A DNA stretch of 64,000 nt from NCBI GenBank assembly GCA_002269645.1, contig NIVC01000235.1:106516-170515 (forward strand). The letters run 5' to 3'. Under the pieces are notes generated by a model, which was not told the origin of the DNA, did no database searches, and worked only from the letters and a program-made list of their open reading frames with translations. The position numbers and the translations under genes were made by a program. This document shows, piece after piece, positions 7,721 through 60,467 of this stretch. This DNA comes from Macrostomum lignano. Lineage: Eukaryota. Within the stretch, counting starts at the first letter, position 1. Each line of letters starts with the position of its first letter.

Positions 7721-7958
7721 ACAAGTAGTAAACGCCATATCAATAAATCAAATAAAAAAGTTATAATTTAAATAAAAGAGTAAGTAGAAATTCATAACCT
7801 TATGAATAGATTTCAAGAAAATCACTATTGTGAAGAAATGACTGTGAATTCATAAAATTGTAATCACAATTGTGATTAAACCCAACTTCTAAATTTTATC
7901 CTAGTATACACTAGGCCTTTTATAATCTAAACCATAGTATAGACTATCATAGATTATT

Positions 7959-24623: not shown

Positions 24624-25837
24624 ACTCTTTTTCCCGCTGAAATCCTCACAGCAAAAAGCCATCTGGCACTTTTTGTCATCTGGCTTTGACTAACCCAATA
24701 ATGCGCTTTATGGCATTGCTACACAGGAGAGCGTCCCGGTCCTTCCTTCGCGTTAATTCACTGAAAGATAACATTTATTTTTTGCCTCGGCTTAATCTTC
24801 AATTCGTGTTTCCCGTCCCGGCTGGTTTAGCTCCCAAATATGGGATCAAGCCTTCCCGCATCGTTGAGTGATGGCGGCCCTAAGGCCTTCAGCGCGCGCT
24901 TGGCTTGCGCAGTTTCTGGTGGAGTGCGCGGGGGACGGCCCGGGCCAGAAGCTTTGACGGGCTCGGGCGACAGTCAACATGTGTTGCCTGTCTTCACCCT
25001 CCATCGCCAGTCTCCCATCCAATTCTTCCCCTCATATCCTGCTGCCGTCTTTTTGTTCGCCAGCTCTCTCAGTTTGTCTGTCTGACCGTCAGAGGAAGTT
25101 CGTTTTGCCCCCCCCGCTGCCTCGCAGCCAGCATCCAGGAACCTTGGAAGTGGAGGGGATAGGCCATGAAGTTCTGGGCGTAGAAGCAGAATTAAAGTCT
25201 GCATTTCCCCCGAGGTCTAGGCTGGTTTTCTTCTAATTTCTTAATTTTTGTTGGAAAAACTCTTCGTAAAAGTTTTTCGCACGGATGAAGATGGGGTTTT
25301 TGTGTCACTAAAATCCCCAAATTCCCATTTAGATTTTTGTTACAAGTTTATTCTGAGGTCTAAATCTAGAAATTTTTATATCCCAGAATATGGAAAGCGG
25401 TGTGTCTTTTTTCGTTGTTTTTCAGACCAGAGTTTGAATGAAAACCATCTAAATTATCTATAGTTAACTGATAACTCGTGATTGAATATTCACGTGCTTC
25501 TCAGTTACGGTTGCTTAAATCTAAGTTGGATCGTTTCAGCATAGCAGCAGCACTCAAGTGTCTTATCCAGATGGTAGTTTCAAAACCTCTTGACCAGGCA
25601 ACGTCTGCGCACGCTGATCGATGGGAGTTTCCTCCCATTTCCTCTTTCTGCGTGTGAAAATATTTTTGTGAACATGGGGCATTTTTTAAAACTAGCTATT
25701 TTCATTTCTTCGTAATTGGAAGTGCGTCTCGGCCGCTGCTTCTTCACTTCTGGCATCTCTGTCCGGTAGTGCATTCTTGTTGCTGGGTCAGACTGGCTTG
25801 CTCTGTTACTCGCATTGCGGGGCAGAGATTGGAGAGG

Positions 25838-27440
25838 AGAATGTGTCCTGCGTCTTGATGTGCAGGACACATACTGGAGAAGAGAATGTCCTGCGTCTTG
25901 ATGTGCAGGACACATACTGGAGAGTGAGAATGTCCTGCGTCTTGATGTGCAGGACAGATGAGAATGTCCTGCGTCTTGATGTGCAGGACACATACTGGAG
26001 AGGGAGAATGTCCTGTGTCTTCATGTGCAGGACACATACTGGAGAGGGAGAATGTCCTGCGTCTTGATGTGCAGGACACATACTGGAGAAGAGAATGTCC
26101 TGCGTCTTGATGTGCAGGACAGATGAGAATGTCCTGCGTCTTGATGTGCAGGACACATACTGGAGAGGGAGAATGTCCTGTGTCTTCATGTGCAGGACAG
26201 ATAAGAATGTCCTGCGTCTTGATGTGCAGGACACATACTGGAGAAGAGAATGTCCTGCGTCTTGATGTGCAGGACACATACTGGAGAAGAGAATGTCCTG
26301 CGTCTTGATGTGCAGGACATACTGGAGAGGAGACTGTCCTGCGTCTTGATGTGCAGGTCATACTGGAGAGGAGACTGTCCTGCGTCTTGATGTGCAGGAC
26401 ATACTGGAGAGGAGACTGTCCTGCGTCTTGATGTGCAGGTCATACTGGAGAGGAGACTGTCCTGCGTCTTGATGTGCAGGACATACTGGAGAGGAGACTA
26501 TCTTGTGTCTTGATGTGCAGGACATACTGGAGAGGAGACTGTCCTGCGTCTTGATGTGCAGGTCATACTGGAGAGGAGACTGTCCTGCGTCTTGATGTGC
26601 AGGACATACTGGAGAGGAGACTGTCCTGCGTCTTGATGTGCAGGACATACTGGAGAGGAGACTGTCCTGCGTCTTGATGTGCAGGTCATACTGGAGAGGA
26701 GACTGTCCTGCGTCTTGATGTGCAGGACACATACTGGAGAAGAGAATGTCCTGCGTCTTGATGTGCAGGACAGATGAGAATGTCCTGCGTCTTGATGTGC
26801 AGGACACATACTGGAGAGGGAGAATGTCCTGTGTCTTCATGTGCAGGACAGATAAGAATGTCCTGCGTCTTGATGTGCAGGACACATACTGGAGAAGATA
26901 ATGTCCTGCGTCTTGATGTGCAGGACACATACTGGAGAAGAGAATGTCCTGCGTCTTGATGTGCAGGACATACTGGAGAGGAGACTGTCCTGCGTCTTGA
27001 TGTGCAGGTCATACTGGAGAGGAGACTGTCCTGCGTCTTGATGTGCAGGACATACTGGAGAGGAGACTGTCCTGCGTCTTGATGTGCAGGTCATACTGGA
27101 GAGGAGACTGTCCTGCGTCTTGATGTGCAGGACATACTGGAGAGGAGACTATCTTGTGTCTTGATGTGCAGGACATACTGGAGAGGAGACTGTCCTGCGT
27201 CTTGATGTGCAGGTCATACTGGAGAGGAGACTGTCCTGCGTCTTGATGTGCAGGACATACTGGAGAGGAGACTGTCCTGCGTCTTGATGTGCAGGACATA
27301 CTGGAGAGGAGACTGTCCTGCGTCTTGATGTGCAGGTCATACTGGAGAGGAGACTGTCCTGCGTCTTGATGTGCAGGACATACTGGAGAGGAGACTGTCC
27401 TGCGTCTTGATGTGCAGGACATACTGGAGAGGAGACTGTC
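25838..27440. repeat. Composite ~34-43-bp minisatellite with hairpin core TGTCCTGCGTCTTGATGTGCAGGACA and a 651-bp higher-order duplication
   Basis: The core recurs roughly 40 times, separated by catactggagaagagaa, gatgagaa or tactggagaggagac linkers. Rare variants recur at +651 (GATAAG at 26200/26851; TATCTTGTG at 26499/27150). Confidence 0.95.
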
Positions 27441-31741: not shown

Positions 31742-33801
31742 GCATGGCTGTAGCAACCACTCCCTCCCCACGCCAGGACAAAGACCTGAAGCAGTGCCTA
31801 GAAGAGTGCAGCGGCCTGTTGCATGAAGGCAACGTGCGGCTCTACCTGTACCAGCTGCTCCGCGGCCTGGAGTACTGCCACCGCAGGCGCTACCTGCACC
31901 GGGACCTGAAGCCGCAGAACATCCTGCTGAATCAGCGGGGCGAGTTGAAGCTGGCCGACTTCGGCCTGGCCAGGGCGAACTCTGTGCCCTCCAAGACCTA
32001 CTCAAACGAGGTCTGCACCCTCTGGTACCGGCCGGCAGACGTGCTGCTGGGCAACACCGAGTACAGCACGCACATCGATCTGTGGGGAGTGGGCGCGATC
32101 TTCTTCGAGATGATCACCGGCCGGCCAATGTTCCCCGGCTCCACCGTGGAGGAGCAGCTGCAGCTCATCTTCCGAACTCTGGGTAAGCAGCGGGGGATTA
32201 CCGGTATACCTACTACCACTGGCAGCACCAGATGGGCCATGGCTAAAGCCACTAATGCCGATTTCAGCCTCGCATCTCACTCCCCTTGCAACCGCCTGTC
32301 TCATTCCCACCTCACTATCCCATCTCATCCTCATCTCAGCCCTCTATTTTATCTCGATTTCAGCCTCCCATTTCATCCCAATCTCACCCTTCCGTCTCAT
32401 CCCAATCTCACCCTTCCATCTCATCCCAATCTCACCCTTCCGTCTCATTCCAATCTCACCCTTCCATCTCATTCCAATCTCACCCTTCCATCTCATCCCA
32501 ATCTCACCCTCCCAGCCCATTCCCATCTCATTCTCATCTCTCCCTCCCATCTCATTACCATCTCTCCCCCATCTCATTCCCATCTCATTCCCATCTTAGC
32601 CTCCCAACCCATTCCCATGTCACCCTCCCATCTCATCCTCATTTCACCCTCCCATCTTATCCTCATCTCACCCTCCCATCTCATCCTCATTTCACCCTCC
32701 CATCTTATCCTCATCTCACCCTCCTATCTCATCCTCATTTCACCCTCCCATCTTATCCTCATCTTACCCTCCCATCTCATCCCCATATCAGTCCTTTATT
32801 TTATTCCTATCTCTGCATCGCATCTCATCCCCATCTTAGCCTCCCGTTTCATCCCAAGCTGACCAGTCGATCCCATTCCATCGGATCCTACAGGCAGCCC
32901 CACCGAGGAGTCGTGGCCGGGCAGCGAGTCCAACCAGCAGCTGCAGGCCTACAATTTCCCGCACTGGCTGGGCATGGATTTGAAATCCGTGGCGCCCCGG
33001 CTCAGCCCCACTGGCCAGGACCTGATGCGCCAGCTGCTGCAGTATCAGGCAAACAGGAGAATCTCGGCGGAGAAGGCCAAGCTGCATCTGTATTTCATGC
33101 AGTTCATGCCGGCCATTCTCAATGATTTGCCAGACAGTGAGTGCTCTGCTCGGGTTGTGGGCTTTGTCTGCGCTTGCTGCAAGTGAGGGTTTATTGATTG
33201 TGATAGGGTTTATTGATTGTGATAGGGTTTATTGATTGTGATAGGGTTTATTGATTGTGATAGGGTTTATTGATTGTGATAGGGTTTATTGATTGTGATA
33301 GGGTTTATTGATTGTGATAGGGTTTATTGATTGTGATAGGGTTTATTGATTGTGATAGGGTTTATTGATTGTGATAGGGTTTATTGATTGTGATAGGGTT
33401 TATTGATTGTGATAGGGTTTATTGATTGTGATAGGGTTTATTGATTGTGATAGGGTTTATTGATTGTGATAGGGTTTATTGATTGTGATAGGGTTTATTG
33501 TGATCTCCCCCCCCGAACTGCAGCCTCATCAATATTTGAGATCCCGGGCGTCTGTCTGTACACAAATCCTGTGCCCCACTGCCGGGCTCCGGCCGGCTGC
33601 AGCAGTGCGGTCCTACCCGGTGAGTGTTTTGAGCTTTTATAAGCTACTTACTTAGTAGTGCACTTGGCCAATCAATTTTACCGACTTACAGCTCTATTAT
33701 CGCACCACCCCCTTCGCTCTCTCCACCCGTTATCTCCTACTCATTCATCCCGCCCCTTTCCCCGCTGCTAAGTGTCGGAGTCTGCAGACTTCATCACTTG
33801 A
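30079..33801 (+). CDS. CDK16/17/18: PCTAIRE-type cyclin-dependent kinase, common exons 30079-30665, 30786-30900, 30984-31078, 31777-32182, 32894-33136, 33524-33619 and probably ~33773-33801
   Basis: The spliced product contains KRLSLPA and [12 protein letters not shown] (PCTAIRE regulatory motifs), LDKLGQ|[27 protein letters not shown]|[32 protein letters not shown]|[21 protein letters not shown] and TLWYRP. The GT/AG junctions up to the donor at 33620 are phase-consistent. The terminal exon is uncertain. Confidence 0.95.
31141..31742. repeat. (TCTG)n compound microsatellite in a CDK intron
   Basis: TCTG array with interspersed TTAGTG variants. Confidence 0.97.
32280..32860. repeat. Degenerate ~24-bp pyrimidine-rich repeat (CATCTCATCCCAATCTCACCCTTC-like) in a CDK intron
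   Basis: Translates as SHPNLTLP / SHLILISP repeats and lies between the donor at 32183 and the acceptor at 32893. Confidence 0.88.
33187..33503. repeat. 19-bp minisatellite GGGTTTATTGATTGTGATA, ~16 copies, in a CDK intron
   Basis: Perfect tandem copies that fill most of intron 33137-33523. Confidence 0.97.
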
Positions 33802-34432: not shown

Positions 34433-35077
34433 AAGGAATTGAGGGCAAGCGGTGAGGTTTAAAACCGCAGTAATTACAAGATTAGAGCAGGCAGCTTCCC
34501 ATTGCCTGCTTTTTGCTTTCGTATTTTACTCCTCTGCTTTGCCTAGCGATTCATTTCAACGTCCCAGGTTCGAATCGGCTTCATTCGCACTTTTTTGCGT
34601 CGAAGTTCCCCCAGTAAATTTTATGATCAATGATTTTGTGCAGAAGCTGCGAACCCATTCTCCAAACAGTTTTTTTATTACCTATCAGCTTCTCCAGCTC
34701 ATTACTGAAGCTCATTAATAATTTAATCAGTCCATTCAAGCCTCGAGTCTTCACTCCGCCTCTTTGCAGACAAGCGCCGCCAGTCCATGCTGTTCTGATG
34801 AGGCCGGGAGGCTGGATTTCCGATTTTCCACGCTTTACGTTCGGTAATTTGATTGCTCGGTTTTAGCAGTTGGCTCCTAACATCACGAAATGATGTAAAT
34901 TAGTTTAGAAAGCTGTCTTTGTGCCACTCTGCTGTGTGCATAGAAATGCCTAACAGTTTGCTGTTTATTTAAATCCGCGCATTGACCCGCTGTTCGAACT
35001 CGATTTTTATCTAGCCGGATTTTGCAATGTTCAGTGTAGGCGGCTGTCTGTTTTTTGGGAAAATTATCAGATATGGT

Positions 35078-38000
35078 CGCTCCCGAACTGCCCCCCTTCC
35101 AGAAGAATCGCCCCAAACTGCCCCCAGAGGAATCGCCTCAAACTGCCCCCAGAAGAATCGCCCCAAACTGCCCCCCCCAGAAGAATCGTCCCAAACTGCC
35201 CCCCCCCAGAAGAATCGCCCCAAACTGCCCCCCCCCCAGAAGAATCGCCCCAAACTGCCCCCAGAAGAATCGCCCCCAAACTGCCCCCCCCAGAAGAATC
35301 GTCCCAAACTGCCCCCCCCCCAGAAGAATCGTCCCAAACTGCCCCCCCCAGAAGAATCGCCCCAAACTGCCCCCCCAGAAGAATCGTCCCAAACTGCCCC
35401 CCAGAAGAATCGCCCCAAACTGCCCCCCCAGAAGAATCGCCCCAAACTGCCCCCCAGAAGAATCGCCCCCAAACTGCCCCCCCCCCAGAAGAATCGTCCC
35501 AAACTGCCCCCCCCAGAAGAATCGTCCCAAACTGCCCCCCAGAAGAATCGCCCCAAACTGCCTCCCCAGAAGAATCGCCCCAAACTGCCCCCCAGAAGAA
35601 TCGCCCCAAACTGCCCCCAGAAGAATCGCCCCCAAACTGCCCCCCCCCAGAAGAATCGTCCCAAACTGCCCCCCCCCAGAAGAATCGTCCCAAACTGCCC
35701 CCCAGAAGAATCGCCCCAAACTGCCCCCCCCAGAAGAATCGCCCCAAACTGCCCCCCCCAGAAGAATCGCCCCAAACTGCCCCCAGAAGAATCGCCCCCA
35801 AACTGCCCCCCCCCAGAAGAATCGTCCCAAACTGCCCCCAGAAGAATCGTCCCAAACTGCCCCCCCAGAAGAATCACCCCAAACTGCCCCCCCCAGAAGA
35901 ATCGCCCCAAACTGCCCCCCAGAAGAATCGCCCCAAACTGCCCCCCCCCAGAAGAATCGCCCCAAACTGCCCCCCCCCAGAAGAATCGCCCCAAACTGCC
36001 CCCAGAAGAATCGCCCCCAAACTGCCCCCCCCCCAGAAGAATCGTCCCAAACTGCCCCCCCCCAGAAGAATCGTCCCAAACTGCCCCCCAGAAGAATCGC
36101 CCCAAACTGCCCCCCCCCAGAAGAATCGTCCCAAACTGCCCCCCCCCAGAAGAATCGTCCCAAACTGCCCCCCCCCCCAGAAGAATCGTCCCAAACTGCC
36201 CCCCAGAAGAATCGCCCCAAACTGCCCCCCAGAAGAATCGCCCCAAACTGCCCCCCAGAAGAATCGCCCCCAAACTGCCCCCCCCCCCCCAGAAGAATCG
36301 TCCCAAACTGCCCCCCCCCCCAGAAGAATCGTCCCAAACTGCCCCCCAGAAGAATCGCCCCAAACTGCCTCCCCAGAAGAATCGCCCCAAACTGCCCCCC
36401 AGAAGAATCGCCCCAAACTGCCCCCAGAAGAATCGCCCCCAAACTGCCCCCCCCCCAGAAGAATCGTCCCAAACTGCCCCCCCCAGAAGAATCGTCCCAA
36501 ACTGCCCCCCAGAAGAATCGCCCCAAACTGCCCCCCCCCCCCCAGAAGAATCGCCCCAAACTGCCCCCCCAGAAGAATCGCCCCAAACTGCCCCCCAGAA
36601 GAATCGCCCCAAACTGCCCCCCCCAGAAGAATCGTCCCAAACTGCCCCCCAGAAGAATCGCCCCAAACTGCCTCCCCCAGAAGAATCGCCCCAAACTGCC
36701 CCCCCCAGAAGAATCGCCCCCAAACTGCCCCCCCCAGAAGAATCGTCCCAAACTGCCCCCCCCCAGAAGAATCGCCCCAAACTGCCCCCCCCCAGAAGAA
36801 TCGCCCCAAACTGCCCCCCAGAAGAATCGCCCCAAACTGCCCCCCCCAGAAGAATCGCCCCAAACTGCCCCCCCCAGAAGAATCGCCCCAAACTGCCCCC
36901 CAGAAGAATCGCCCCCAAACTGCCCCCCCCCCCAGAAGAATCGTCCCAAACTGCCCCCAGAAGAATCGCCCCAAACTGCCTCCCCCAGAAGAATCGCCCC
37001 AAACTGCCCCCAGAAGAATCGCCCCAAACTGCCCCCAGAGGAATCGCCTCAAACTGCCCCCAGAAGAATCGCCCCAAACTGCCCCCCCAGAAGAATCGCC
37101 CCAAACTGCCCCCAGAAGAATCGCCCCAAACTGCCCCCCCCCCAGAAGAATCGCCCCAAACTGCCCCCCCCCCAGAAGAATCGTCCCAAACTGCCCCCCA
37201 GAAGAATTGCCCCAAACTGCCCCCCCCCAGAAGAATCGCCCCAAACTGCCCCCCCCCCAGAAGAATCGCCCCAAACTGCCCCCCAGAAGAATCGCCCCAA
37301 ACTGCCCCCCCCCAGAAGAATCGTCCCAAACTGCCCCCCAGAAGAATCGCCCCAAACTGCCTCCCCCAGAAGAATCGCCCCAAACTGCCCCCCCCCAGAA
37401 GAATCGCCCCAAACTGCCCCCCCAGAAGAATCGTCCCAAACTGCCCCCCCCAGAAGAATCGCCCCAAACTGCCCCCCCCAGAAGAATCGCCCCAAACTGC
37501 CCCCCAGAAGAATCGCCCCAAACTGCCCCCCCCAGAAGAATCGCCCCAAACTGCCCCCCCAGAAGAATCGCCCCAAACTGCCCCCCAGAAGAATCGCCCC
37601 CAAACTGCCCCCCCCAGAAGAATCGTCCCAAACTGCCCCCCCCCCAGAAGAATCGTCCCAAACTGCCCCCCAGAAGAATCGCCCCAAACTGCCTCCCCCA
37701 GAAGAATCGCCCCAAACTGCCCCCCAGAAGAATCGCCCCAAACTGCCCCCCAGAGGAATCGCCTCAAACTGCCCCCAGAAGAATCGCCCCAAACTGCCTC
37801 CCCCAGAAGAATCGCCCCAAACTGCCCCCAGAGGAATCGCCTCAAACTGCCCCCAGAAGAATCGCCCCAAACTGCCCCCAGAAGAATCGCCCCAAACTGC
37901 CCCCCCCCAGAAGAATCGTCCCAAACTGCCCCCCCAGAAGAATCGCCCCAAACTGCCCCCCAGAAGAATCGCCCCAAACTGCCTCCCCAGAAGAATCGCC

Positions 38001-38434
38001 CCAAACTGCCCCCCCAGAGGAATCGCCTCAAACTGCCCCAGAAGAATCGCCCCCAAACTGCCCCCCCCCCAGAAGAATCGCCCCAAACTGCCTCCCCCAG
38101 AAGAATCGCCCCAAACTGCCTCCCCCAGAAGAATCGCCCCAAACTGCCTCCCCCAGAAGAATCGCCCCAAACTGCCCCCCCCCCAGAAGAATCGCCCCAA
38201 ACTGCCCCAGAAGAATCGCCCCAAACTGCCTCCCCCAGAAGAATCGCCCCAAACTGCCCCCCAGAGGAATCGCCTCAAACTGCCCCCAGAAGAATCGCCC
38301 CCAAACTGCCCCCCCAGAAGAATCGCCCCAAACTGCCTCCCCAGAAGAATCGCCCCAAACTGCCCCCCAGAGGAATCGCCCCAAACTGCCCCCAGAAGAA
38401 TCGCCCCAACTGCCCCCAGAGGAATCGCCCTAAT
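35078..38434. repeat. 3.3-kb C-rich satellite, unit CAGAAGAATCG(C/T)CCCAAACTGCCCCC(C)n (~27-33 bp)
   Basis: More than 100 tandem units with variable C-run length; it is the source of the 400-1193 aa ORFs. Confidence 0.98.
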
Positions 38435-39544: not shown

Positions 39545-40668
39545 ATTGCATATCGCATTGGATCAAATTGGGGATCGCATTGGATCAAATTGGGGATCGC
39601 ATTGGATCAAATTGGGGATCGCATTGGATCGAATTGGGATCACATTGGATCAAATTGGGATCACATTGGATCAAATTGGGATCACATTGGATCAAATTTG
39701 GATCACATTGGATCAAATTGGATCAAATTGGGATCACATTGGATCAAATTGGATCAAGTTGGGGATCGCATCGGATCAAATTGGGATCACATTGGATCAT
39801 ATTGGGTACCCAATTGAATCAAATTGGGATCACATTGGATCAATTTGGGATCAAATTGGATCAAGTTGGGGATCGCATCGGATCAAATTGGGATCACATT
39901 GGATCAAATTGGGATCACATTGGATCAAATTGGGATCACATTGGATCAAATTGGATCAAATTGGGATCACATTGGATCAAATTGGATCAAGTTGGGGATC
40001 GCATCGGATCAAATTGGGATCACATTGGATCATATTGGGTACCCAATTGAATCGAATTGGGATCACATTTGATCAAATTGGGATCACATTGGATCAAATT
40101 GGGATCACATTGGATAAAATTAGATCAAGTTGGGGATCGCATCGGATCAAATTGGGATCACATTGGATCATATTGGGTACCCAATTGAATCGAATTGGGA
40201 TCACATTGGATCAAATTGGGATCACATTGGATCAAATTATGATCACATTGGATCAAATTGGGATCACATTGGATCTAATTGGAATCAAATTGGGGATCAC
40301 ATTGGATCAAATTGGGATCACATTGGATCAAATTGGGATCACATTGGATCTAATTCGAATCAAATTGAGGATCGCATTGGATCAAATTAGGTACCCAATT
40401 GAATCGAATTGGGATCACATTTGATCAAATTGGGATCACATTGGATCAAATTATGATCACATTGGATCAAATTGGGATCACATTGGATCTAATTGGAATC
40501 AAATTGGGGATCACATTGGATCAAATTGGGATCACATTGGATCAAATTGGGATCACATTGGATCAAATTGGGATCACATTGGATCATATTGGGTACCCAA
40601 TTGAATCGAATTGGGATCACATTTGATCAAATTGGGATCACATTGGATCAAATCGGGGATCAAACTAG
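39545..40668. repeat. GATC-rich ~10/21-bp satellite (GGATCAAATTGGGATCACATT) with recurring 14-bp palindromes ATTGGGTACCCAAT
   Basis: Tandem array that abuts the stop codon of the 2H phosphoesterase gene. Palindrome variants occur near 39801, 40034, 40172 and 40588. Confidence 0.96.
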
Positions 40669-40674
40669 ATCGCA

Positions 40675-41818
40675 TTACATGTAGTTCGCAAGGCTGCTGC
40701 CAACCTCCCGGTCAGCGACCAGCTCCTCGGGCACGGAGCGGCCGTCCCACTCGATGAACTGCACCATGCCGCGGTACCAGCAGAGCCGGGCCGCCTCCAG
40801 CTGCATGACCGGCGGCTCAGCCAGCAGGGCCTGGCGAACGCTCGCCTGCACCGCGGCCAGCTCCGACTTGACAACCTGCTCCTCGGCCGCGGGGATGCGC
40901 TGGTACTGGTAGCCAAGGGTGCAGTGCAGCGCTTGGTACTGTGGCAGCTTGCCTCTGCAGTTGAAGTCATGCGGTTGCCTTCTGAACTTGTTATTTTAAT
41001 GCCTATATCAGCCAGTCCCAGTGGAAGGCACCCGCTTTGATCAGCCAGTCCCGGTGGAAGACCAGCTTAGATCAGCCAGTCCCCGGTGGAAGACCAGCTT
41101 AGATCAGCCAGTCCCGGTGGAAGACCAGCTTAGATCAGCCAGTCCCCGGTGGAAGACACCCGCAAAGATCAGTCCCAACAGGTGATAGACACCAGCTTAG
41201 ATCAGTCCCAACAGGTGATAGACACCAGCTTAGATCAGTCCCAACTGGTGATAGACACCCGCTCAGTCCTTTCAGCCTCTTCCTCATCCGCGTCACTCAC
41301 CCCTCGCACACGAGCCGTCGAGCCTCTTCTATCAGCTGATTCTGAGACTCATCCGCCAAGGCCACATCAAAGCCCACAATGCTGGCATTGGGCGAGAAGA
41401 ATCTCTTGAAGACCACCGCGGGCTTCAGCTGCATCCGCCTCAGGTTGTCAGCCAGCTCAGGCCAGCCTGCGGCAGTCTTGGCTCGAACCGTCCCCAGCCA
41501 GTCGCTTCGGGTTGCAGTTCGGCCTCTATTGGTCACCCCGGCGATGGTCACGTGATAGCTAGCAGCCGGCAGCGGGGCGAAGTACTGCGACAGCGTCGGT
41601 TGCGCGGCCAGCGCCCGCTCCGCTGCTGATTCGAGGCGACGCCGGGACTCGGCTGGCAGCGGGCAGATCACGGTGACACCGGGGAAGTAGGACCAGGCGC
41701 CCGTACTGTCGATCTTTGGCGAGATGGGGTGCGGCTGCTGCTCCATGAGTTCTGCGTGTTCGGGGGGGGGCGGCAGTTTTCTCTTTTGGTGATTTTGGGC
41801 TTTAACACCTGAGTGCAT
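40675..41818 (-). CDS. DUF1868-like 2H phosphoesterase (RNA ligase/cyclic-nucleotide phosphodiesterase fold). Exons 41818 (or 41746)-41301 and 40981 (or 40978)-40675.
   Basis: Exon 1 contains KIDSTGAWSYFPGVTVIC...LPAASYHVT. After a phase-2 splice (GG|gtgagt...ttcag|A), exon 2 reads RQPHDFNCRGKLPQYQALHCTLGYQYQ...LCWYRGMVQFIEWDG...NYM*. Two HxT motifs (HVT and HCT) and the FPGxTVIC and LPxxSYHxT blocks are typical of DUF1868. Confidence 0.8.
41013..41260. repeat. Two related intronic minisatellites (~31-32 bp ATCAGCCAGTCCCGGTGGAAGACCAGCTTAG and 33 bp ATCAGTCCCAACAGGTGATAGACACCAGCTTAG)
   Basis: About 4 + 3 copies within intron 40982-41300. Confidence 0.85.
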
Positions 41819-41996: not shown

Positions 41997-42160
41997 ACTC
42001 TCAAGGAGAAACCGCTCTGGTGACTAAGGACTCTCAAGGGGAATCGTTCAGGTAGCTAAGGACTCTCAAGGGGAATCGTTCAGGTAGCTAAGGACTCTCA
42101 AGGGGAATCGCTCAGGTGACTGAGGAATCTCAAGGGGAATCATTCAGGTGACTAAAGGAC
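41997..42160. repeat. 31-bp minisatellite GGACTCTCAAGGGGAATCGTTCAGGTAGCTA-like, ~5 copies
   Basis: Directly visible between the head-to-head genes. Confidence 0.85.
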
Positions 42161-43177: not shown

Positions 43178-44590
43178 ATGGCTCTCACCGGTCTCCAGCC
43201 GCTGGACTTGGCCTTCTCTTTCGACACGACCGGCTCAATGTGCTCCGTCATTAACGAGGTGCGCAGCAACATCGCCGAGATGCTGCAGCGGCTCACTACC
43301 GACATCCCGGACCTGAGCGTGGCCCTCATCGCTCACGGAGACTACGGGGACAGATACGAGACGGAGATCCGCGACTTCGGCACCTCCACAGCGGACCTGG
43401 TGCGGTTCGCCAAGACTGTGAAGGACACGTACGGCGGGGACGAGCCCGAGTGCTACGAGCTGGTGCTGCAGCAGGCCCGCACCCGCCTCAGCTGGCGCCC
43501 GCACAGCAGCCGCGCTCTGGTGCTGGTTGGCGACGCCTTCCCGCATGGGGTTGGCAGCGCCAGGAACAAGTACAAGATCGACTGGAAGGCGGAGACCGAG
43601 CTGCTGCACCAGCTGGGAGTCACCGTGTACTGCGTGCAGTGCGGCAGCAGCAGGAACTCGCAGAGCTTTATGGACCACGTCGCCAAGGTGACCGGCGGCC
43701 TGCGGCTCCCCCTGGCCGAGTTCCGGGGCGTTCGCGACTTCCTCATGGCCATCGCCTACCGGGAGGGCGGTACCGACGTCCTTCGCGACGGCTACGAGCG
43801 TGAGGTGCGCGCCAGGGATGGCGCAGCGCTGGCCGGTGACGTGAGCGCCATGCTGGGCCTCGTGCGCCGCTCGTCAGCCGCCACCATGGCCACCAGCGAC
43901 GCTGCCGGTCCAACAAAGACAACAGCAACAACGACGACTTCAAGAACAAAGACTGCTGCTGCACGGCTACCAAAAGCTGCCGAGGCGACCAAATCGGCTG
44001 CTGCCTCATCTGGCAGGGTGCTGAAGAAGCCCGCCGCCAGCAAGTCAGCTGCGAAGACTCCGCGGGCGCGGGCTGCCAGGTCGGTCAGAGTTCGCCGAGA
44101 GACCTGCCTTGACAGGCACCTGCCCGCCGCGCTGGCCGCTCTCACCTGGTCCCCGTGGCGTTTGGTCGGGCAGCCGGGCAGCGTGTCTCGGTTGTCATGG
44201 CAACCGTTTGGCAGCGGCTCGGTGCGTCGGTCGCTGCTCTGCGGCGGCCGTAGCGGCCAGCACGCTGTGGAGCTCGCCGTGCAGCCGCGCCCTGGCGCCC
44301 GGCGCTTCCCGCTGTTCGGCCGCGTCCTCTCGACCGGCAGCGTCCGACGCCGCCGCGAACTGTCGGTCGTCAGCGTGAAGAGCCTCCTGGCCGGCCGACC
44401 GGCTGTCCGGGCCCAGCTGGAGCGGGTGCTCTGCCAGGGCATGCGGGTGTTCGCCAGGGTGGCCGGCGCCGCTCCGGCGAACCCGCGGCCCCGGCTGGCC
44501 AAGGCGGCGAGCTACGCGTGGAACAGCGGCCGGTCCGCGAGGTGCGGCGGCGTCTTCGTGTCCGTGTCGGAGAGGAGCCTGCGCCGCTGA
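43178..44590 (+). CDS. Intronless 470-aa vWA (MIDAS) domain protein with a Thr/Ala/Lys-rich linker and a basic C-terminal domain
   Basis: LDLAFSFDTTGSM (MIDAS DxTxS), IAHGDY, GGDEPECYE, LVLVGDAFPH and VTVYCVQ...VTGG are present. AATAAA lies at 44781. The C-terminal WSPW...YAWN resembles ET-type GIY-YIG domains (inference). Confidence 0.88.
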   Translation: MALTGLQPLDLAFSFDTTGSMCSVINEVRSNIAEMLQRLTTDIPDLSVALIAHGDYGDRYETEIRDFGTSTADLVRFAKTVKDTYGGDEPECYELVLQQARTRLSWRPHSSRALVLVGDAFPHGVGSARNKYKIDWKAETELLHQLGVTVYCVQCGSSRNSQSFMDHVAKVTGGLRLPLAEFRGVRDFLMAIAYREGGTDVLRDGYEREVRARDGAALAGDVSAMLGLVRRSSAATMATSDAAGPTKTTATTTTSRTKTAAARLPKAAEATKSAAASSGRVLKKPAASKSAAKTPRARAARSVRVRRETCLDRHLPAALAALTWSPWRLVGQPGSVSRLSWQPFGSGSVRRSLLCGGRSGQHAVELAVQPRPGARRFPLFGRVLSTGSVRRRRELSVVSVKSLLAGRPAVRAQLERVLCQGMRVFARVAGAAPANPRPRLAKAASYAWNSGRSARCGGVFVSVSERSLRR

Positions 44591-47276: not shown

Positions 47277-48417
47277 CAACCGACGTTTGCCAGCCGACGT
47301 TTGCCAGCCGACGTTTGCCAGCCGACGTTTGCCAGCCGACGTTTGCCATCCGACGTTTGCCTGCGAGACTTTTGCCAGCCGACGTTTGCCAGCCGACGTT
47401 GGCCAGCGGGACATTTGCCAGCCGACGTTTGCCTGCGGGACGTTTGCCAGCCGACATTTGCCAGCCGACGTTTGCCTGCGAGACTTTTGCCAGCCGACGT
47501 TTGCCAGCCGACGTTTGCCAGCCGGACATTTGCAGGCGGCAATTGGTTAAAGAAGTCTGCCCTCTCTAGGCTTACATGTACTTGCATTTGAAAACTGTGG
47601 ACACAGCACTAATCTAATTCCAACTCGCTCCGTGCTACTGCTATTAAATATACAGGTTACTAACAAACTACTGTTCAGGCTTATTGAAGTTATTGCTCTT
47701 GTCTGCCTAAATAGGAAGGTAAAAATACAAAATAGGAGTTTCCATCGTTACATCCTTTACACCGTTACATAGACACAGTTGGTGTCTATGTATGCCATGG
47801 AATGGCCCTTTCCATCTCAGTGGCCAAACAAGCTAAGTGTTTACAAGCTAAATGGGAAAAGACTGAGACATCCATAATGGTATTGGCCTAGTCTCGCCTA
47901 TATATACTTAACTCAAAAGCCAAACTCTGCTTAACGGAGTTTGGCCATGACAGCGTGCACTTGACAAGCTGCATTGGAATTAATTCGCTTTTGGATCTCC
48001 CAATGAACTGGGAAATATATAAGCCAGAATTATCGTTCAGCAGTTCTTTTATTGGCTCAAAACTTCGCTCGCTGGAGATTCCCGTTTAAATTTGCGTGTC
48101 TTCATTTGCAAATCAAAAATCAAACATCTCAAACTGGGAAAAGCGATACAAAACTGTCAGAAGTAAACTTTATAATATTTTCACATTCAAAGAAATTGTT
48201 GTTAAACTGGATGTTAGATTGATGAACTGCATAATTTGTATAGATTTTGTTTTCGAACTTTTATACATGCGAACAACCGTCAAAAATTTGGACTAAAAAA
48301 AACTTTTTCAACCCGCTAAACTGCGAATATTTCAGTATCAAATTTTTCTCTCACTGACTTAATGTTGGCTGGCAAACGTCGGCTAGCAAACGTCCCGCAG
48401 GCAAACGTCGCTATCCC
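47277..48417. mobile_element. Foldback-like DNA transposon remnant with tandem 14-bp subterminal repeats (GCCGACGTTTGCCA)
   Basis: An array at 47277-~47530 has an inverted copy of the same motifs (including CCTGCGGGACGTTTG) at 48363-48417, ending ...CGCTATCCC. The matching left terminus and a TSD were not found. Confidence 0.6.
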
Positions 48418-50628
48418 TATGGGCTTTGTATCGGTTTATTCTGTATCTCAGTACGATCCAGGAGGTTGTGATTGCGAATTGAAATAGAAAAATCCTGTCT
48501 ACAACTTTAAATGGTTAGGCAGGGAAGCAAGAATGCAACCCAAAATTCATTTTTGCGATTATTCTTGAGCAAGGAAGGATGTTAAATCGACGACTGAAAT
48601 GCACTTTTTGAAAATAAAACCAGCGCATATTTGACTTCTTTGTTTTCCATGAAATCGATCAGAACTCCTTAAAGTAAACTAAACTCGGTCTTCTAGCCTC
48701 GTTAGTGAAAAAAGCAGGATAAAATTCATCCATAGATGATTATATATTGTGCCTATTTAATAATTCTCTTGTAAATACGTATTTTGAGAAATTTAGTTAC
48801 TAAATAAAATCTAACCAATTTTTTAAGATTGTAGAGTTGCACAGCTTTCCATTGTATCCCTGACAGTACTGTTTAATCAACAAATAAAAAAGTTTTTTTT
48901 CTGGTAATTTTAAGTTTTTATATATAACAGTTAGATAGTATCTATTAGTTAAATAGTTAGATTGATAATTTATTTTACACCATTTCAATTACACTACACT
49001 TTATATTTTACCTTCAGTTTGTTAATTTGTCTTTTTTATCTTCAATGAGATTTCTTAGCCCTATTATCAATAAAGTCTTGAGTCAATACTCCACTGCAGT
49101 CTAATATACGCTAAGCCTATATAAAGTAAAATTGTCCAGCTGTCGTTATTGTTATTATTTACCACCTTCTAGTGCAAAAGTGATATTCGGGAAAAGTGGC
49201 TCGCTTAATAAAGATAAGATAAATAAAAGTAAGAATCAACATAAATTGTAATAAAAAGTGATAAAAAGTGATAAAAAGTGATATATTCATGATCTTTAAG
49301 AAATACTTTTGCTGCCAAGTACAAAAAATAAAAGACTTTAGGTAGCTAGCTATAGATCATAATGACTCTACATTGACTGAGTAGGAATGTGCTATCAATT
49401 TTCTGGTTTATTATCTAGATCGCATGTTAAAAGGTGATATAATTTATTATCTATTGTTGAAGAGCAAAAGGTTCAAATGTTTTGTAGACTTTCCTATAAC
49501 CATGGACTTTTGTTTGGACTTTTGGACTTGTATTTGTCAATCTGAGTTTAAACACACTAATAATAAAACTTTTTCTACTAGTTTTCCTACTCTATATGCT
49601 TTCTCAGTTGTTTCTTCTTAGAAAATTAAAACTTCTCATTTTGATTTAACATTTCAAGAATTCCTTACTACTGTTAGTAGCAAATCATGCTGGTTTTATG
49701 CCTGGTTTTCTTACTAAATAATTATAATTCATTTAGTTAACTATTTTTTTCTGCAATAATTATAATATTGATTTGTCACAAAGTTTTTTTTAAATCTAGT
49801 TTCGACGTGCTAATAGAGTTTTACAACTTATAACTGTACCTTGGCTTTGGATGAGAGCCAAGTCAGGACTAATGTAGTGCGCGCTTTTTACTGCATTACC
49901 CATGCAGGCTGCATCCACCTGCAATTGATGAGCCATACGCTCTTGTGTCCGTGCTTTCTCTACGCCTGCAGATCCACAGCTTTGACCGTCGGGGTTTACC
50001 AAGAGGCAGAGCAGGGCGGCGGCGGCGGCGGGAGTGGGCTGAGACGGGGATGCAAATAAGGAGTCCCACTTCAGAGCTGTACAGTTTATTCTCACCTTTT
50101 GAGGGGGAAAGCCAAGCCGCCATTGCACGGGCGGATACGGAGAGAAATGAAGGGGGGCAGGAGATGCCCTGGAATCGTTGACCAGAGCTGGCTGCAGGGT
50201 GAGCAGCTGCGCCCCGCAGAGCAGGAGCAGCTTAGGCTAGCAGGCTTAACACCTCGGCCAGTAGAAATGCATGCATTAGCACGTGTAACAATGATTGATT
50301 GCTAGGTTAAAAATCAATGAGCTAATGCGTTTTTGGAACTAAGCTGAAAGGCGTGAGAGAGAGAGCGAGAGAGAGAGAGAGAGAGAGAGTCGACTTGAAA
50401 CACAATTTGACGCAAAACGCAGCGCACTTTGTTTATTTCAATATTTGTACATGGAAAGCTGATAGAGCATTAGTCAGATTAGAGTGTCCAGTCAAATACA
50501 GTGAATATGCGCTAATAAGCCAGGCTGTCCCAGTGCTTCTATTTGATCAAACTCTGGCTTTGCAACGCGGTTAGTCTGTTTGGCTGCACCTTGGTACATT
50601 CAATTTCTATCCAGTTAGTGTTGACTGA

Positions 50629-52332
50629 TTAATCAAGGAAGATGCTGCAGAGCACGTCAACAAGTTCGCCGTTGACATCCTGCGAGCACCAGTCCTCGAC
50701 CGATTTAGTCTCGAATACGAAGCCTTTTCTAGCTGGCTGGTAGAAGTAGCACAGACTGCCGCACACCCGCAGCAGATAGGAGCCGGCGAAGTTTACCTGC
50801 ACTGATTCGTCTGACAGGTGAAAGACATGATAGGTACCACCGCAGTGCTTTGACCAGCTGCGCAGGTAGTGTACAGTTCCGGTGCCTTGGCTCACCCAGC
50901 TGACCTGCTCCCGCATCAGGTTGCTGCTGGGCACATCCTGGAACTCCTCGGTCAAGTCTTGGGCCAGAGGCTCGTAGAATCTGCTGACTGAACCACTCGA
51001 AGTCCGCGTCAGCTCCACTGGCATCTCGGTGGACCGTTTGGCTGAATTTTCTTTGGTGCAGACCTGTCCGCTGACATAGTAAGCCTGGCCAGTGCCCGTG
51101 TTCTGAAGGAAGCTGGTTGCGTCATTATACAAGACACAGTTGTAGCCATCAGACAGCTGATAGTAGAAGCCGCAAGTGGAGGTCTTGTCGCGCCACCAGG
51201 TGAGCCAAGATTGGCCAAAGTCAGTCGCCAGCTTGCCCCACGCTGGTGCCGTCCGAAAATAGCGCAGCAAGGCCGATATCCTTGCTAGACGGAGGTCGAT
51301 CACAGTGGTGGCACTGGTGGAAGCAACCGAGTCAATTTTGAACCGTTTCCTGCCGTTACTGTTGCTGACCGTTGCATCAGTCGCTACCGTTTTTCCCTTA
51401 CCGTTTAAAACGCATGTGAGACTCTTTGGAAATAATCGGGTGCTCGCTGCATATCTCAGGTGCACACAGCCGACTGAGTCCTTGGCATCGCTGATCAGCC
51501 GACTCTCATACTGCTGGCTGTAGCTGCAGAACTGGTGCCGCTCAATCTCGTCAAGTTCCGGCCGCTCCTCCGGGTCTAGGTGCAACATTCGAGCCACCAG
51601 GTCCCGCAGATGTTCGTCTGTGTGGTGTCGAGTGAACTCGTAGCTACCTGTCACGATGCACCGGTAAATATCGGCAAGCTCGTCCATCTGGAACGGTGGC
51701 AGTCCGCCAAACAGTGTGTATAGCACCACGCCACAGGACCAGATGTCGCTCTTGGTTGTGTGACCTTGACGCAGTAGCACCTCTGGGCTGAGGTAGTTGG
51801 GCGTGCCACAGGCCAAGTGCCGCTCCAGATAGCTTCTAGTAATTGTGCACGACAAGCCGAAGTCTGTAATCTTTATAACATCATTTACGTCTACCAGGAT
51901 GTTGCTTAGTTTGAGATCGCGGTGTAGGATGTTGCAACTGTGCAGGTAACGCAGGCCGGTAATTAACTGGGTGAAGTAGTAGGCAGCCAGGTCTAACGAC
52001 AGGCAGGTTAGGTGGACAATCATATCAGCCAGAGACTTTTTGTTGCAGTATTCCAGCACAAAGTATATGAAGTCGTCGTAAACAAAGTTGGCGTACAATT
52101 CGACCACGTTGCGATGCCTTAGCCGACTGTGGATGTCGACCTCGTACTGCAGGTAGGGCTCTTTTGAGGCCTGCTGGATCATGCGCAAGCTGATCTTCTT
52201 CACTGCCACTACCCTCTCAGCGCTGTCACCGGGCGGTCTCTCAATCGCCTTGTAGCAGACGCCGAATCCACCCTTGCCCAGGCAGGGGCCGATGTCGTAA
52301 GCAATGTCTTCCCGGTGCACTGTAGTCGTCAT
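50629..52332 (-). CDS. Intronless, divergent Polo-like kinase (kinase domain plus two polo boxes), 567 aa
   Basis: LGKGGFGVCY (PLK-type Cys in the Gly-loop), VAVK, HRDLKLSN, DFG and CGTPNYLSPE are present. PB1 is WLTWWRDKTSTCGFYYQLSDGYNCVLYND and PB2 is YLRSWSK...FHLSDESVQVNF. A minus-strand AATAAA lies at 50432-50437. Confidence 0.92.
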   Translation of the reverse strand: MTTTVHREDIAYDIGPCLGKGGFGVCYKAIERPPGDSAERVVAVKKISLRMIQQASKEPYLQYEVDIHSRLRHRNVVELYANFVYDDFIYFVLEYCNKKSLADMIVHLTCLSLDLAAYYFTQLITGLRYLHSCNILHRDLKLSNILVDVNDVIKITDFGLSCTITRSYLERHLACGTPNYLSPEVLLRQGHTTKSDIWSCGVVLYTLFGGLPPFQMDELADIYRCIVTGSYEFTRHHTDEHLRDLVARMLHLDPEERPELDEIERHQFCSYSQQYESRLISDAKDSVGCVHLRYAASTRLFPKSLTCVLNGKGKTVATDATVSNSNGRKRFKIDSVASTSATTVIDLRLARISALLRYFRTAPAWGKLATDFGQSWLTWWRDKTSTCGFYYQLSDGYNCVLYNDATSFLQNTGTGQAYYVSGQVCTKENSAKRSTEMPVELTRTSSGSVSRFYEPLAQDLTEEFQDVPSSNLMREQVSWVSQGTGTVHYLRSWSKHCGGTYHVFHLSDESVQVNFAGSYLLRVCGSLCYFYQPARKGFVFETKSVEDWCSQDVNGELVDVLCSIFLD

Positions 52333-56931: not shown

Positions 56932-57858
56932 AAATTGAGCGCCAAAGCGGATAAAATCCGTGAATTCCAGTCGAGCCCGGAAGAAGAGGTTGCGGCTGTG
57001 CGCGCCATATTCCCGGACTTGCTGGCTGCGGACCCGGACGCGGATGCGGACTCTGCCACGGCCGGCCGCGCCGTTTGCAGTAGCCGATCGCTCCGCCTGG
57101 CTGTCTTCTTGCGGCGGCGTCGTCTGCGGTGCTGCGCCGAACTGGACGCTGGCGCGCCGGGCTACCCGGACTCGGCCGGGCCGGGGATTCGCGTCCGCTT
57201 CGAATCGCTTGACCTCTCCGGCCGAGATTGCTCAACGAAGCAGCTTGAGGAGCTGGTGACAAGTTCGCTAGCTGCGTCGGCAGAATCTTTGGCTGGCGCG
57301 CCGGCTCTCATGCAGCTGGTGCAGGTCCTTGTCGACCTGCTTGACGAGCTCGAGTCCGATTGCGCCTCACCCAGCGGCGAGTCTCAAACTGGGAGTCCTG
57401 CGGCAGTTGATGCTCAAGGTGTCCCTGCTTCCACAGACTGCAGTCAAGATGCCACTGCGTGGCGGTGTGTCCTGGTCCATCTGGAGCACATGCGCAGTCG
57501 AAAAATCTACCTCTCTCACCTGCGCAGCTGGACAGACAGCTTAGGGGCCGGCTTCAGGTGTCGGGTTCTCCTACACGACTGCCGATCGAGCATCGCCGCC
57601 CACCTGCTGCTGGCCGGACCGGCCGCCCGCGTGGCAGAATTCCTTCGACGACTGCGCACTGAGCGCGTCGACATCGACTCGCGCGGGCGTCCATGTCGGG
57701 AGCGCCTGATGTCGGTGCTGCACGACGAGAGCGCCGGTCGGCGGGACGCATCTGACGCCAGCGGATTCAAGACTCTGACCTGCTGCCAGCCGGACTCTGT
57801 GCGGGTGGAGATGACTCAGCACGGCTGCGCTGACTGGCTGCCCTCTGTTCTGCACTGA
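56932..57858 (+). CDS. RWDD3: RWD-domain protein 3 (RSUME)-like; no in-frame ATG at the 5' end
   Basis: The N-terminal RWD domain reads EEEVAAVRAIF...GYPDS. The C-terminus HLEHMRSRKIY...W...VAEFLRRLRTERVDIDSRGRPCRERLMSVL matches the RWDD3 pattern HLDHMR...VDVDSSGKKCKEKMISVL. An in-frame TAG lies at 56929-56931. Confidence 0.85.
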   Translation, partial: KLSAKADKIREFQSSPEEEVAAVRAIFPDLLAADPDADADSATAGRAVCSSRSLRLAVFLRRRRLRCCAELDAGAPGYPDSAGPGIRVRFESLDLSGRDCSTKQLEELVTSSLAASAESLAGAPALMQLVQVLVDLLDELESDCASPSGESQTGSPAAVDAQGVPASTDCSQDATAWRCVLVHLEHMRSRKIYLSHLRSWTDSLGAGFRCRVLLHDCRSSIAAHLLLAGPAARVAEFLRRLRTERVDIDSRGRPCRERLMSVLHDESAGRRDASDASGFKTLTCCQPDSVRVEMTQHGCADWLPSVLH

Positions 57859-58290
57859 GAGCCTGTTGTCTGCACTGAGAGCCTGTTGTCTGCACTGAGA
57901 GCCTGTTGTCTGCAACTGAGAGCCTGTTGTCTGCACTGAGAGCCTGTTGTCTGCAACTGAGAGCCTGTTGTCTGCAACTGAGAGCCTGTTGTCTGCACTG
58001 AGAGCCTGTTGTCTGCAACTGAGAGCCTGTTGTCTGCAACTGAGAGCCTGTTGTCTGCAACTGAGAGCCTGTTGTCTGCACTGAGAGCCTGTTGTCTGCA
58101 ACTGAGAGCCTGTTGTCTGCAACTGAGAGCCTGTTGTCTGCAACTGAGAGCCTGTTGTCTGCACTGAGAGCCTGTTGTCTGCAACTGAGAGCCTGTTGTC
58201 TGCAACTGAGAGCCTGTTGTCTGCACTGAGAGCCTGTTGTCTGCACTGAGAGCCTGTTGTCTGCACTGAGAGCCTGTTGTCTGCAACTGA
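57849..58290. repeat. 20/21-bp minisatellite TGCA(A)CTGAGAGCCTGTTGTC, ~21 copies, beginning on the RWDD3 stop codon
   Basis: The gene ends CTG CAC TGA and these bases form the start of the first repeat unit. Confidence 0.97.
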
Positions 58291-60467
58291 GATTGGCTCC
58301 AATCCAAGGATACATGTTGAATAGATAGAGCTCGATGGCGGAATTCTTTGCTGAGTGACTGGCAATGCGATCTAATTGACTCTGGCTAAGTTTGTCAAGC
58401 TCAATGTAGTTATTCACTAACCTGTGAAACTGCCTGTCACTTTGCATTTCAAGTCTTCGATTCAATCTACATGCAGTTCACTGTTGTTTACAGTGCAGCC
58501 CGCCTGTTTGCATGAAAATCGGCATCTGGAGCAGGTGCATGAAAAACACAATTAAAATGTTTAAGATTGGCATTTTAAATCTCTTGCGTACGACACGTTT
58601 GAGAAATTGCTTGAGCAGGAGGAAATTGCCAGAGGCAAACTATCAGTTATTTTGGGATGCGGGTGCGCACCCGATCCAAGCACTGAGCCTGGAAGTTAAT
58701 TTTTATAATTGAAGCTAAGCTGTTTGTCCTGCAGAAAAGATTTCGCGTGTTTTTTGTCAGTTTCCGGCCAAACCAACTGCCCTACACGGAGAAGGGTCTC
58801 GATGTAGAGCTGAGCTGTTGACTAATAGTCCCAATACTGCCATAAGTACTCTCAGTCAGACATTTTGTCAAATAAACCATCATGATTTACAAACAACGGT
58901 TTATAAAACTATTTTCAGTCCGGATCTTTTTGTACATTTTTTGCTGGTTTACTATTGTGCCGGCATGCCAGTTCCTCAGGGCTTCTGCAGGAAGCATCGG
59001 GAAATTTTCCGTGATCTGAATTGGTTTTTCAAAACTTCACGCGGCTAAGGCGTGCAAGTCAACAGTGCTGTCAGCTGTGTCGGCTGGCTTTATTTTCAAA
59101 TTCGCTTACTTGCGAGTACTTCCTGTCTTCATCCGAGACTCCAGAACCTCAGCCCATTGTTCTGTTTTGATTTTCTAAGACCGGTACGCAGACAAGAAGA
59201 CTATAGAGAGATTGAGTTGGCTGCAGTGTTGTCAAGCAGCCCTGCTGCATCTAGCGTAAGGCAGCTCTCTGTCCATGGAAAGCTGAGCAACTTGGCTGCG
59301 GTGCGGGAACTGAGGTTGACCAAAGGTTGAAAAGGCCGGTCCTACTGAGCATTCAGTTTGGACAGATTTTGAGGAGTTCTTGAAAACTTGACAATTTTAT
59401 GAAAGGATGGTGGAAAGCGCCGATGCATGACATTCAAATCCCATGTCGAGCTTGTTAGGGTGAAAGTGAGAGGCATTTCTGAAACTAAAATGATTATCTA
59501 GTGAGCTGGAACACGGAGTTGCAGAACTATTGCGTGCTGAAAGGATGAGGCCGGATATGAGCTGGGGTAGAGCAGCACCAGAGCTGCATTAAGATTGATG
59601 TCTGCAGCTAATTCAGCAACGCTGGGGTGCATTAGATGATGATGAACTCTTCCTTCGAAATCGACCGCTCACAGGCTCCTGCTCGCACTCGACTCGGATC
59701 ATTCAAACTCAGCTTAGGAAATTTCGAGAGTACTCAGGTACAGGTCAATGATAGCTTTCTAAAGATTAGGTCAACAACGATATGAAAAATGAGATTGTAA
59801 GCATTGTCTACATTTAGTTATTTAGACAAGTCTAGGAGCGTAGGAACAGCTACCTACCATTGTAGTTTTGTCGTGCTTATGCCGCCCCGAGTTTCCCAAA
59901 CCGTGTATCTGAAGTATCCACTTCATTAATCTTGTGCTCCGCAGCGATGCGCTCTCTTCTCAGGTCTAATAATATAATTATTGACCAGATGACATTTCAG
60001 TGACTGATAAGCATGCAAGGTATTCCAGATGCGTTGTCTTGCCCATTCGCTTTAAGGTAGCCGCGCAGTTCAGAGGCCGCTCAGCCAATCATGGCTCGAG
60101 TCTCCATCACGAGTTTGAGTCGTGATGGATTTGTCCGTCGCTTCCCCGACCTAGCCAGTCTCTGGAACTTGCTCATCACCCGCCCGAATTACCGGCTTAT
60201 TATAAGTCCGAGTGAAGAGATTAAGACACCTGGTTTGCCTCCCAGTCTCCCAGCAGCAAACGGAGCCTTGCAGCTGAAAGTCTGACAGAACAGAGGAGTC
60301 AGTGCAGCTCGGACTCGCCTACCAAAGGTCAGTTGCAGCAACTGCGCCTACGCTGCGATTTCTCACCCACACAGCTGAACTGACTCTCAGTGCGGTTCCC
60401 GAAAGAGAGGCTCTCAACTCAATCAGTAAGGCCACTGCTCACTAGAAGGAGCTCAAGAAACACAAAC

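Follow-up and report, generated by a model that had tools for sequence, protein, structure and literature searches.

On the minus strand, the window (the whole 64,000-nt stretch of Macrostomum lignano DNA analysed here) carries a real, intact, two-exon DUF1868 gene, whose coding exons flank a single GT..AG intron and together give a 241-aa product. The coding part of exon 1 (41301..41746, minus strand) comprises residues 1-148 plus two bases of codon 149 and starts at ATG 41746 with MEQQ, the same opening as in the NCBI relative P0001. A tblastn search with the 241-aa product returns this exon at 100% (41746-41300). The exon is contained in a minus-strand ORF (41818..41297) that carries SYHVT, and the first of two HxT motifs, H65-V66-T67 within PLPAASYHVT, is read directly in the sequence at 41546..41554 (minus strand). 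A first-pass annotation of this DNA had placed the gene start at 41818, a placement that we abandon: the annotated start is ATG 41746, and the 24 residues that the upstream in-frame ATG would add all lie outside the conserved domain.

The intron (40955..41300, minus strand; 346 nt, phase 2) opens with GT at 41300-41299 and closes with AG at 40956-40955. Its donor reads GTGAGT at 41300 and the unspliced frame meets a TGA right behind it. Most of the intron sequence is minisatellite, resolved by Tandem Repeats Finder into two abutting arrays with units of 31 and 33 bp (41007..41263). The coding part of exon 2 (40675..40954, minus strand) then runs from the third base of codon 149 to residue 241 and the stop codon TAA (40677-40675), with residues 150-241 matching 40953-40678 at 100% by tblastn and with the same junction as in the NCBI protein P0001 (...CEGGKLPQ...). 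The second motif, H159-C160-T161 in LHCTLGYQY, is likewise read in the sequence (40918..40926, minus strand), so that the two HxT motifs sit one per exon as had been proposed. The first-pass annotation was also right that exon 2 is missing in its correct frame from the list of ORFs, where it is represented only by a 58-aa GTG-started tail (40675..40851), its remainder being overlain by an out-of-frame ORF of 101 aa.

Two in-frame AG acceptors are separated by a 27-nt stretch (40955..40981, minus strand), and both AGs are kept in a second genomic copy of the gene (L001, described below). Use of the upstream AG (40983-40982) adds nine residues, turning ...CEGGKLPQ... into ...CEGRQPHDFNCRGKLPQ..., and corresponds to the junction 41301>40981 suggested originally; this junction is in frame, but its acceptor is probably 27 nt off, since both P0001 and a homologue profile favour 40954. 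On that profile, which was built from 36 homologues without the query and has 219 positions, the 241-aa product scores 161.6 bits vs 157.9 bits for the 250-aa product, that is, 3.7 bits in favour of acceptor 40954. In the AlphaFold model the nine extra residues would be placed in loop 147-157, where internal confidence is lowest. Because of the lower profile score and the location of the addition in a low-confidence loop, the 250-aa form (acceptor 40981) is not the best model and is a possible minor isoform.

Genomic setting and second copy

Among nearby ORFs in the window are those for a polo-like kinase, a VWA-domain protein, a further kinase and a rhodopsin-type GPCR. The polo-like kinase (50629-52332, minus strand) is a single-exon gene for 567 aa with a kinase domain and one detectable POLO box, and its NCBI copy has equal length. 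The VWA-domain ORF (43178-44590, plus strand) is intronless, encodes 470 aa with a weak Pfam VWA match and is divergent to the DUF1868 gene. Its VWA domain is N-terminal and is followed by a long low-complexity tail rich in Ala, Ser and Arg; a search of this protein against the PDB gave no relative, and the gene is annotated as 326 aa in the other copy. It may be native to the animal or may have been transferred jointly with the DUF1868 gene.

The second genomic copy of the DUF1868 gene lies on contig NIVC01001263.1 (L001, 362 kb), where the order kinase, VWA, DUF1868, kinase is the same as in the window and the uniquely aligned flanks are ~96-99.7% identical. Coding differences between the two copies amount to 6/726 bases, four of them synonymous and two replacement, with no indels, and the intron has the same donor and acceptor sequences in both. 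The gene thus looks maintained under constraint at the sequence level, although a dN/dS value rests on six differences, too few for a firm estimate. Intron length differs about fourfold, 346 nt in the window vs 1434 nt in L001, because the intron consists largely of the 31- and 33-bp tandem repeats.

Codon usage of the DUF1868 gene is that of its surroundings, with an RSCU correlation of 0.87 with the neighbours and a GC3 of 0.81 vs 0.64-0.84 in them. Contamination is excluded because the neighbours are animal genes, a second contig is collinear, an intron is present and codon usage is host-like: the gene is physically integrated in the flatworm genome. The first-pass description of an intron-bearing gene stands in the same way, the intron being of the spliceosomal GT..AG type and having animal genes around it.

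Tandem repeats frame the gene on both sides. A 21-bp satellite of ~52 copies (39552..40662) occupies the 3′ flank from 13 nt past the stop codon and is also found in L001 at another length, and a 32-bp tandem repeat of five copies (41997..42160) lies in the 5′ flank between the DUF1868 gene and the divergent VWA gene. Further off, at 35077-38430, a C-rich unit of 26/27 bp (TCGCCCCAAACTGCCCCCCCAGAAGAA) is repeated ~122 times in an array of 3.3 kb, which is shorter in the second copy; on either strand, several frames of this array give spurious ORFs of 400-1190 aa. Minisatellites with units of 4-84 bp occur throughout the window (for example at 10985-11639, 17801-18548, 25830-27440, 33186-33500 and 57849-58292). 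Several of them have another length in the collinear NCBI contig, so that the two genomic copies differ mainly in repeat length. G+C content falls to 0.31-0.37 at 4001-10000 and 48001-50000 vs ~0.45-0.62 elsewhere in the window.

The gene is present in public annotation as an uncharacterised DUF1868 protein. The NCBI protein BOX15_Mlig011589g1 (P0001, 241 aa, Macrostomum lignano) differs from the window product by 2 aa, its model uses a start equivalent to ATG 41746 and an acceptor equivalent to 40954, and in UniProt it bears the title 'DUF1868 domain-containing protein' with a precomputed Pfam call that is also PF08975. Another M. lignano entry, P0002 (UniProt A0A1I8IQF9, 157 aa), begins like the DUF1868 gene, is missing the middle of the protein and then runs in the wrong frame of exon 2 (...CTAPLATST...); the entry reflects either faulty gene modelling in an older assembly or a third copy that has degenerated.

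Protein family and predicted activity

Pfam assigns the 241-aa protein to a single family, PF08975 (DUF1868, '2H-phosphodiest'), at 31.4 bits against a cut-off of 21 (E 2e-7), a match that spans model positions 3-69 of 116 only and thus the N-terminal half. The homologue profile extends it to a full-length family match, covering positions 8-212 of 219, and matches of this strength are not expected by chance. A search of NCBIfam with the protein gave no match. Nine residues invariant in 37 family members (G16, G23, P60, S63, H65, T67, H159, Y164 and L206) are all kept by the flatworm protein, and T161 is present in ≥90% of the family in the same 37-member alignment.

AlphaFold2 with the family alignment predicts the fold with a pLDDT of 89 and a pTM of 0.86. 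In the model there are two similar lobes, and the HxT motifs open the central strands 65-73 and 158-165; both features of the 2H superfamily, an H-x-T/S motif in each half and a bilobed alpha/beta fold, are thus present. Foldseek against the PDB ranks 2fsq/Atu0111 best (E 4e-9), followed by Usb1, Arabidopsis CPDase, LigT and AKAP18, with CNPase far weaker, and nearly all of the top ~30 fold matches are 2H enzymes. Among predicted viral structures (BFVD), the top match is unnamed and the other two of the best three are DUF1868 proteins, one from Terrestrivirus and one from an isopod iridescent virus; Acb1, 2′-5′ RNA ligase-like proteins and the phosphodiesterases ns2 and VP3 follow at lower ranks. 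Because Pfam, profile, invariant residues and predicted fold all agree, we assign the flatworm protein, on sequence and model, to the DUF1868-type members of the 2H phosphoesterase superfamily. This first-pass identification is therefore retained, with PF08975 above its cut-off, the profile match and 2fsq as top fold match all speaking for it. Against the AKAP7/AKAP18, USB1, CNPase and ASCC1 families there is no Pfam match at E≤1 and the likeness is at fold level only (TM 0.3-0.47); best matches to AKAP7-, USB1- or CNP-like metazoan proteins, which would have spoken for an ordinary animal 2H gene, are not what Pfam returns, and none of the labelled relatives is of such a type.

The protein has no signal peptide and no extra domain and is predicted to be a soluble single-domain enzyme. 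Its site of action would most likely be the cytosol or nucleus, since a signal peptide is lacking. Catalysis in the cleft between the lobes would rely on His65 and His159 as general base and acid, and the substrate pocket presumably owes its shape to the conserved K11, S63, Y64 and Y164 and to the C-terminal LC.F..M..F..W block. To our knowledge, every characterised 2H enzyme hydrolyses a 2′,3′-cyclic phosphate or a 2′-5′ phosphodiester; the substrate expected here would be of one of these two classes, with the cyclic phosphate carried by a nucleotide, by ADP-ribose or by the end of an RNA. By analogy, we infer that the enzyme may act in RNA repair or in cyclic/2′-5′ oligonucleotide signalling. 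Full-text literature searches for DUF1868, PF08975 and Mlig011589 found nothing.

Distribution and origin of the gene

An exhaustive HMMER scan of 1.84 billion representatives returned 233 relatives at E≤1e-3, with 62 representatives at E≤1e-10. The relatives are mostly anonymous metagenomic proteins, and cluster look-ups put names to about a quarter of 30 of them. Those with labels are found in Legionella, giant viruses and protists, which bears out the first impression of a mainly microbial and giant-viral family with a patchy presence in eukaryotes.

In bacteria, scanned with one genome per species, the close subfamily occurs in ~30 Legionella/Legionellales and three Oligoflexia including Fluviispira, while Pseudomonas, Paenibacillus, sphingomonads and others carry distant versions. 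At nine of 30 Legionella loci (L007, L008, L010, L012 and five others; ~1600-2900, minus strand) the DUF1868 gene has a GAF-domain class III adenylate/guanylate cyclase divergently upstream of it and a gene for an M1 aminopeptidase downstream. This neighbourhood was set aside as functional evidence, as it probably reflects synteny among close species.

Giant-virus contigs hold three of the nearest tree neighbours of the flatworm protein: P0030, adjoining a full Rpb1 and a fused DHFR-TS; P0015, adjoining an Rpb1 fragment that carries an intein; and P0132, adjoining DUF5857 and a Skp1-like gene. In IMG/VR, two GVMAGs and one 360-kb viral contig also have the family. On two unrelated giant-virus-like contigs (L048 1-2892 and L049 5001-10125) the DUF1868 gene is directly beside Rpb1, which in L048 carries a LAGLIDADG intein, and in L053 the neighbour is an AlkB-like 2OG-Fe(II) oxygenase. 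Taken as clues to function, the Rpb1 and AlkB-like contexts of giant viruses and the GAF-cyclase context of the nine Legionella are no more than hints.

A protist clade of 13 includes the dinoflagellate Durusdinium trenchii, the choanoflagellate Acanthoeca spectabilis and MMETSP and EukProt transcripts, and other members of it are placed on compact eukaryotic contigs beside COG3, CysRS and RPS4e, or DAGAT. An intron shared with a eukaryotic homologue was considered and rejected, the nearest of the ~8 introns of the Durusdinium gene being 5-6 residues away from that of the flatworm. No other animal is found among the labelled relatives, where most matches are anonymous and the best 150 of 233 are listed; because most are anonymous and 83/233 stand outside that list, further animals could be hidden among them. 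The gene has probably been either gained laterally or kept by very few animals.

The branch leading to the flatworm protein is very long, with ~1.5 substitutions per site separating the protein from any other sequence. In neighbour-joining (NJ) trees with two distance measures it pairs with the metagenomic P0006 (from a 990-nt contig) and then with the viral P0015 and P0030. The trees are distance-based and no placement of the flatworm protein reaches strong support: P0006 is its sister in ~50% of 300 bootstrap replicates (150 per distance measure), and the protist clade is in the next enclosing group in 53-64%. Scored against group profiles, the protein reaches 133 bits with the protist profile, 114 with Legionella, 106 with giant viruses, 81 with Oligoflexia and 71 with distant bacteria. 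The gap pattern around the second motif is that of the viral and P0006 group, unlike the protist clade.

The best explanation, to which we assign a probability of roughly 60%, is that this is a functional nuclear 2H phosphoesterase gene gained laterally from the pool of such genes in protists, giant viruses and intracellular bacteria. The gene would have entered the Macrostomum lineage laterally, from a pool common to protists, their giant viruses and their intracellular bacteria, and the donor would more likely have been a microbial eukaryote or a giant virus than a bacterium; the transfer would be old enough for host codon usage and the intron to arise. Judged from sequence comparisons, lateral gain is the likelier reading of the gene's origin, a protist or giant-virus source is favoured and a direct bacterial origin is least supported. 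Of the earlier suggestion of a horizontally acquired gene that has gained an intron, acquisition and intron gain are thus kept as the likelier reading, but the bacterial donor that it implies is the least favoured, the protist profile scoring 19 bits above that of Legionella. A full-text literature search for Macrostomum lignano together with 'horizontal gene transfer' returned only papers on unrelated gene families.

Vertical descent with loss is conceivable because a choanoflagellate homologue exists. Here a gene of the holozoan ancestor would have been kept in Macrostomum and lost from most animals, with no transfer into animals. The best score on the microbial-eukaryote profile, the inclusion of Acanthoeca spectabilis in that clade, the fully host-like codon usage and the intron would all suit such a history, which we nevertheless regard as unlikely. 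No other animal is seen among the labelled relatives, very many independent losses would be needed, and no specific pairing of the flatworm protein with Acanthoeca appears. Moreover, the flatworm protein is without the insertions typical of the protist clade, its gap patterns match the giant-virus/P0006 group, and none of the Durusdinium introns lies at the Macrostomum position.

A direct transfer from a bacterium, for instance a Legionella-like or Oligoflexia-like intracellular associate, with later gain of the intron, is improbable. It draws on the best non-self match, P0003 (33% identity, E 6e-22 with phmmer), which lies in a compact bacterial-style gene row beside a PD-(D/E)XK nuclease, and on Legionella being the largest labelled group of close relatives. 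P0003 and P0004 are themselves of Legionella type and reach 240-270 bits on the Legionella profile, on which the flatworm protein falls 19 bits short of its own protist score. Furthermore, no labelled Legionella is among the listed frequent sisters of the flatworm protein in the 300 bootstrap replicates, and its first motif reads SYHVT, which it has in common with the protist clade, vs the Legionella-type consensus SYHMT.

Since the subfamily is concentrated in intracellular parasites of protists, a role in degrading immune signals would be an attractive, speculative possibility. Carried further, the subfamily might be an enzyme of host-parasite conflict that, like ns2, VP3 or Acb1, breaks down nucleotide second messengers having 2′-5′ or cyclic linkages (2-5A, 2′3′-cGAMP-like signals), and Macrostomum would have captured a virus or protist copy that now tunes its own innate immune signalling. 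We regard this extension as a long shot; if true, it would be a case of an animal domesticating the immune-evasion enzyme of a pathogen.

That the locus might be contaminating DNA, a product of misassembly or a pseudogene in decay, with no function in the worm, is the least credible reading of all, for although the third M. lignano entry P0002 is scrambled and frame-shifted and satellites surround the locus, two independent collinear copies lie among animal genes with intact frames, identical canonical splice sites, no coding indels and mostly synonymous differences, every invariant catalytic and structural residue is kept and the fold is predicted with confidence.

If the lateral origin holds, the gene would offer a clear-cut example of foreign DNA in a flatworm, present in two copies, interrupted by an intron and host-like in its codon usage. 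It also shows a minisatellite-filled intron that is tolerated, and varies in length, within a gene of this kind. The DUF1868 family is otherwise concentrated in intracellular bacteria and the giant viruses of protists and is without an assigned function. Macrostomum lignano is genetically tractable, with RNAi and transgenesis, and is therefore a practical place to find what any DUF1868 enzyme does. No long-standing question is opened by the gene, which is an unstudied member of a known family, as it is already in databases as an uncharacterised DUF1868 protein.

Comparison with known systems

The closest known system by structure is Atu0111 of Agrobacterium tumefaciens (2fsq), the structural prototype of PF08975 and thus a member of the same Pfam family as the flatworm protein. 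The two are alike in size, in having a single domain and in their two HxT motifs, and Foldseek superposes them with a TM of 0.64-0.66 over 239 columns. Sequence identity is only ~17%, and a PDB sequence search finds 2fsq at a marginal E=1. Atu0111-like proteins of free-living proteobacteria form a distant outgroup to the flatworm subfamily, in which the motif KID..FPGVT..LPxxSYH[VM]T..H.TL.YQY..LC.F..M..F..WDG is common to Legionella, giant viruses and protists. Atu0111 itself is given as of 'unknown function' (PMC3290555).

The DUF1868 proteins of giant viruses (Terrestrivirus, Armadillidium vulgare iridescent virus and GVMAG contigs) share family and fold with the flatworm protein, with E-values of 3e-10 and 3e-9 in BFVD for the first two, and the viral P0015, P0030 and P0132 have its gap pattern around the second motif. 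They are grouped with it in a minority of NJ replicates. Identity to the flatworm protein is 24-28%, and the viral profile gives it fewer bits than the protist one (106 vs 133). Some viral members have large insertions, and the viral genes are without introns, unlike the flatworm gene.

More remote are the characterised 2H enzymes, namely USB1, plant and yeast CPDase, LigT/ThpR, AKAP7/AKAP18, CNPase, ns2, VP3 and Acb1, which have the two-lobed fold and the paired HxT/S motifs in common with the flatworm protein and presumably the same acid-base chemistry. Coronavirus ns2 and rotavirus VP3 are 2′,5′-PDEs and Acb1 is a phage 2H enzyme. Foldseek probabilities are 0.87-1.0 for the non-CNPase 2H members and 0.4-0.6 for CNPase, with a TM of 0.38-0.47 and an rmsd of ~5.5-7 Å for most. 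The flatworm protein is larger than LigT or Acb1 and is without AKAP, NLS or tRNA-ligase modules, and the substrate specificity of the characterised enzymes is not transferable to it; what it has in common with all of them is the bilobed scaffold with its two HxT/S motifs.
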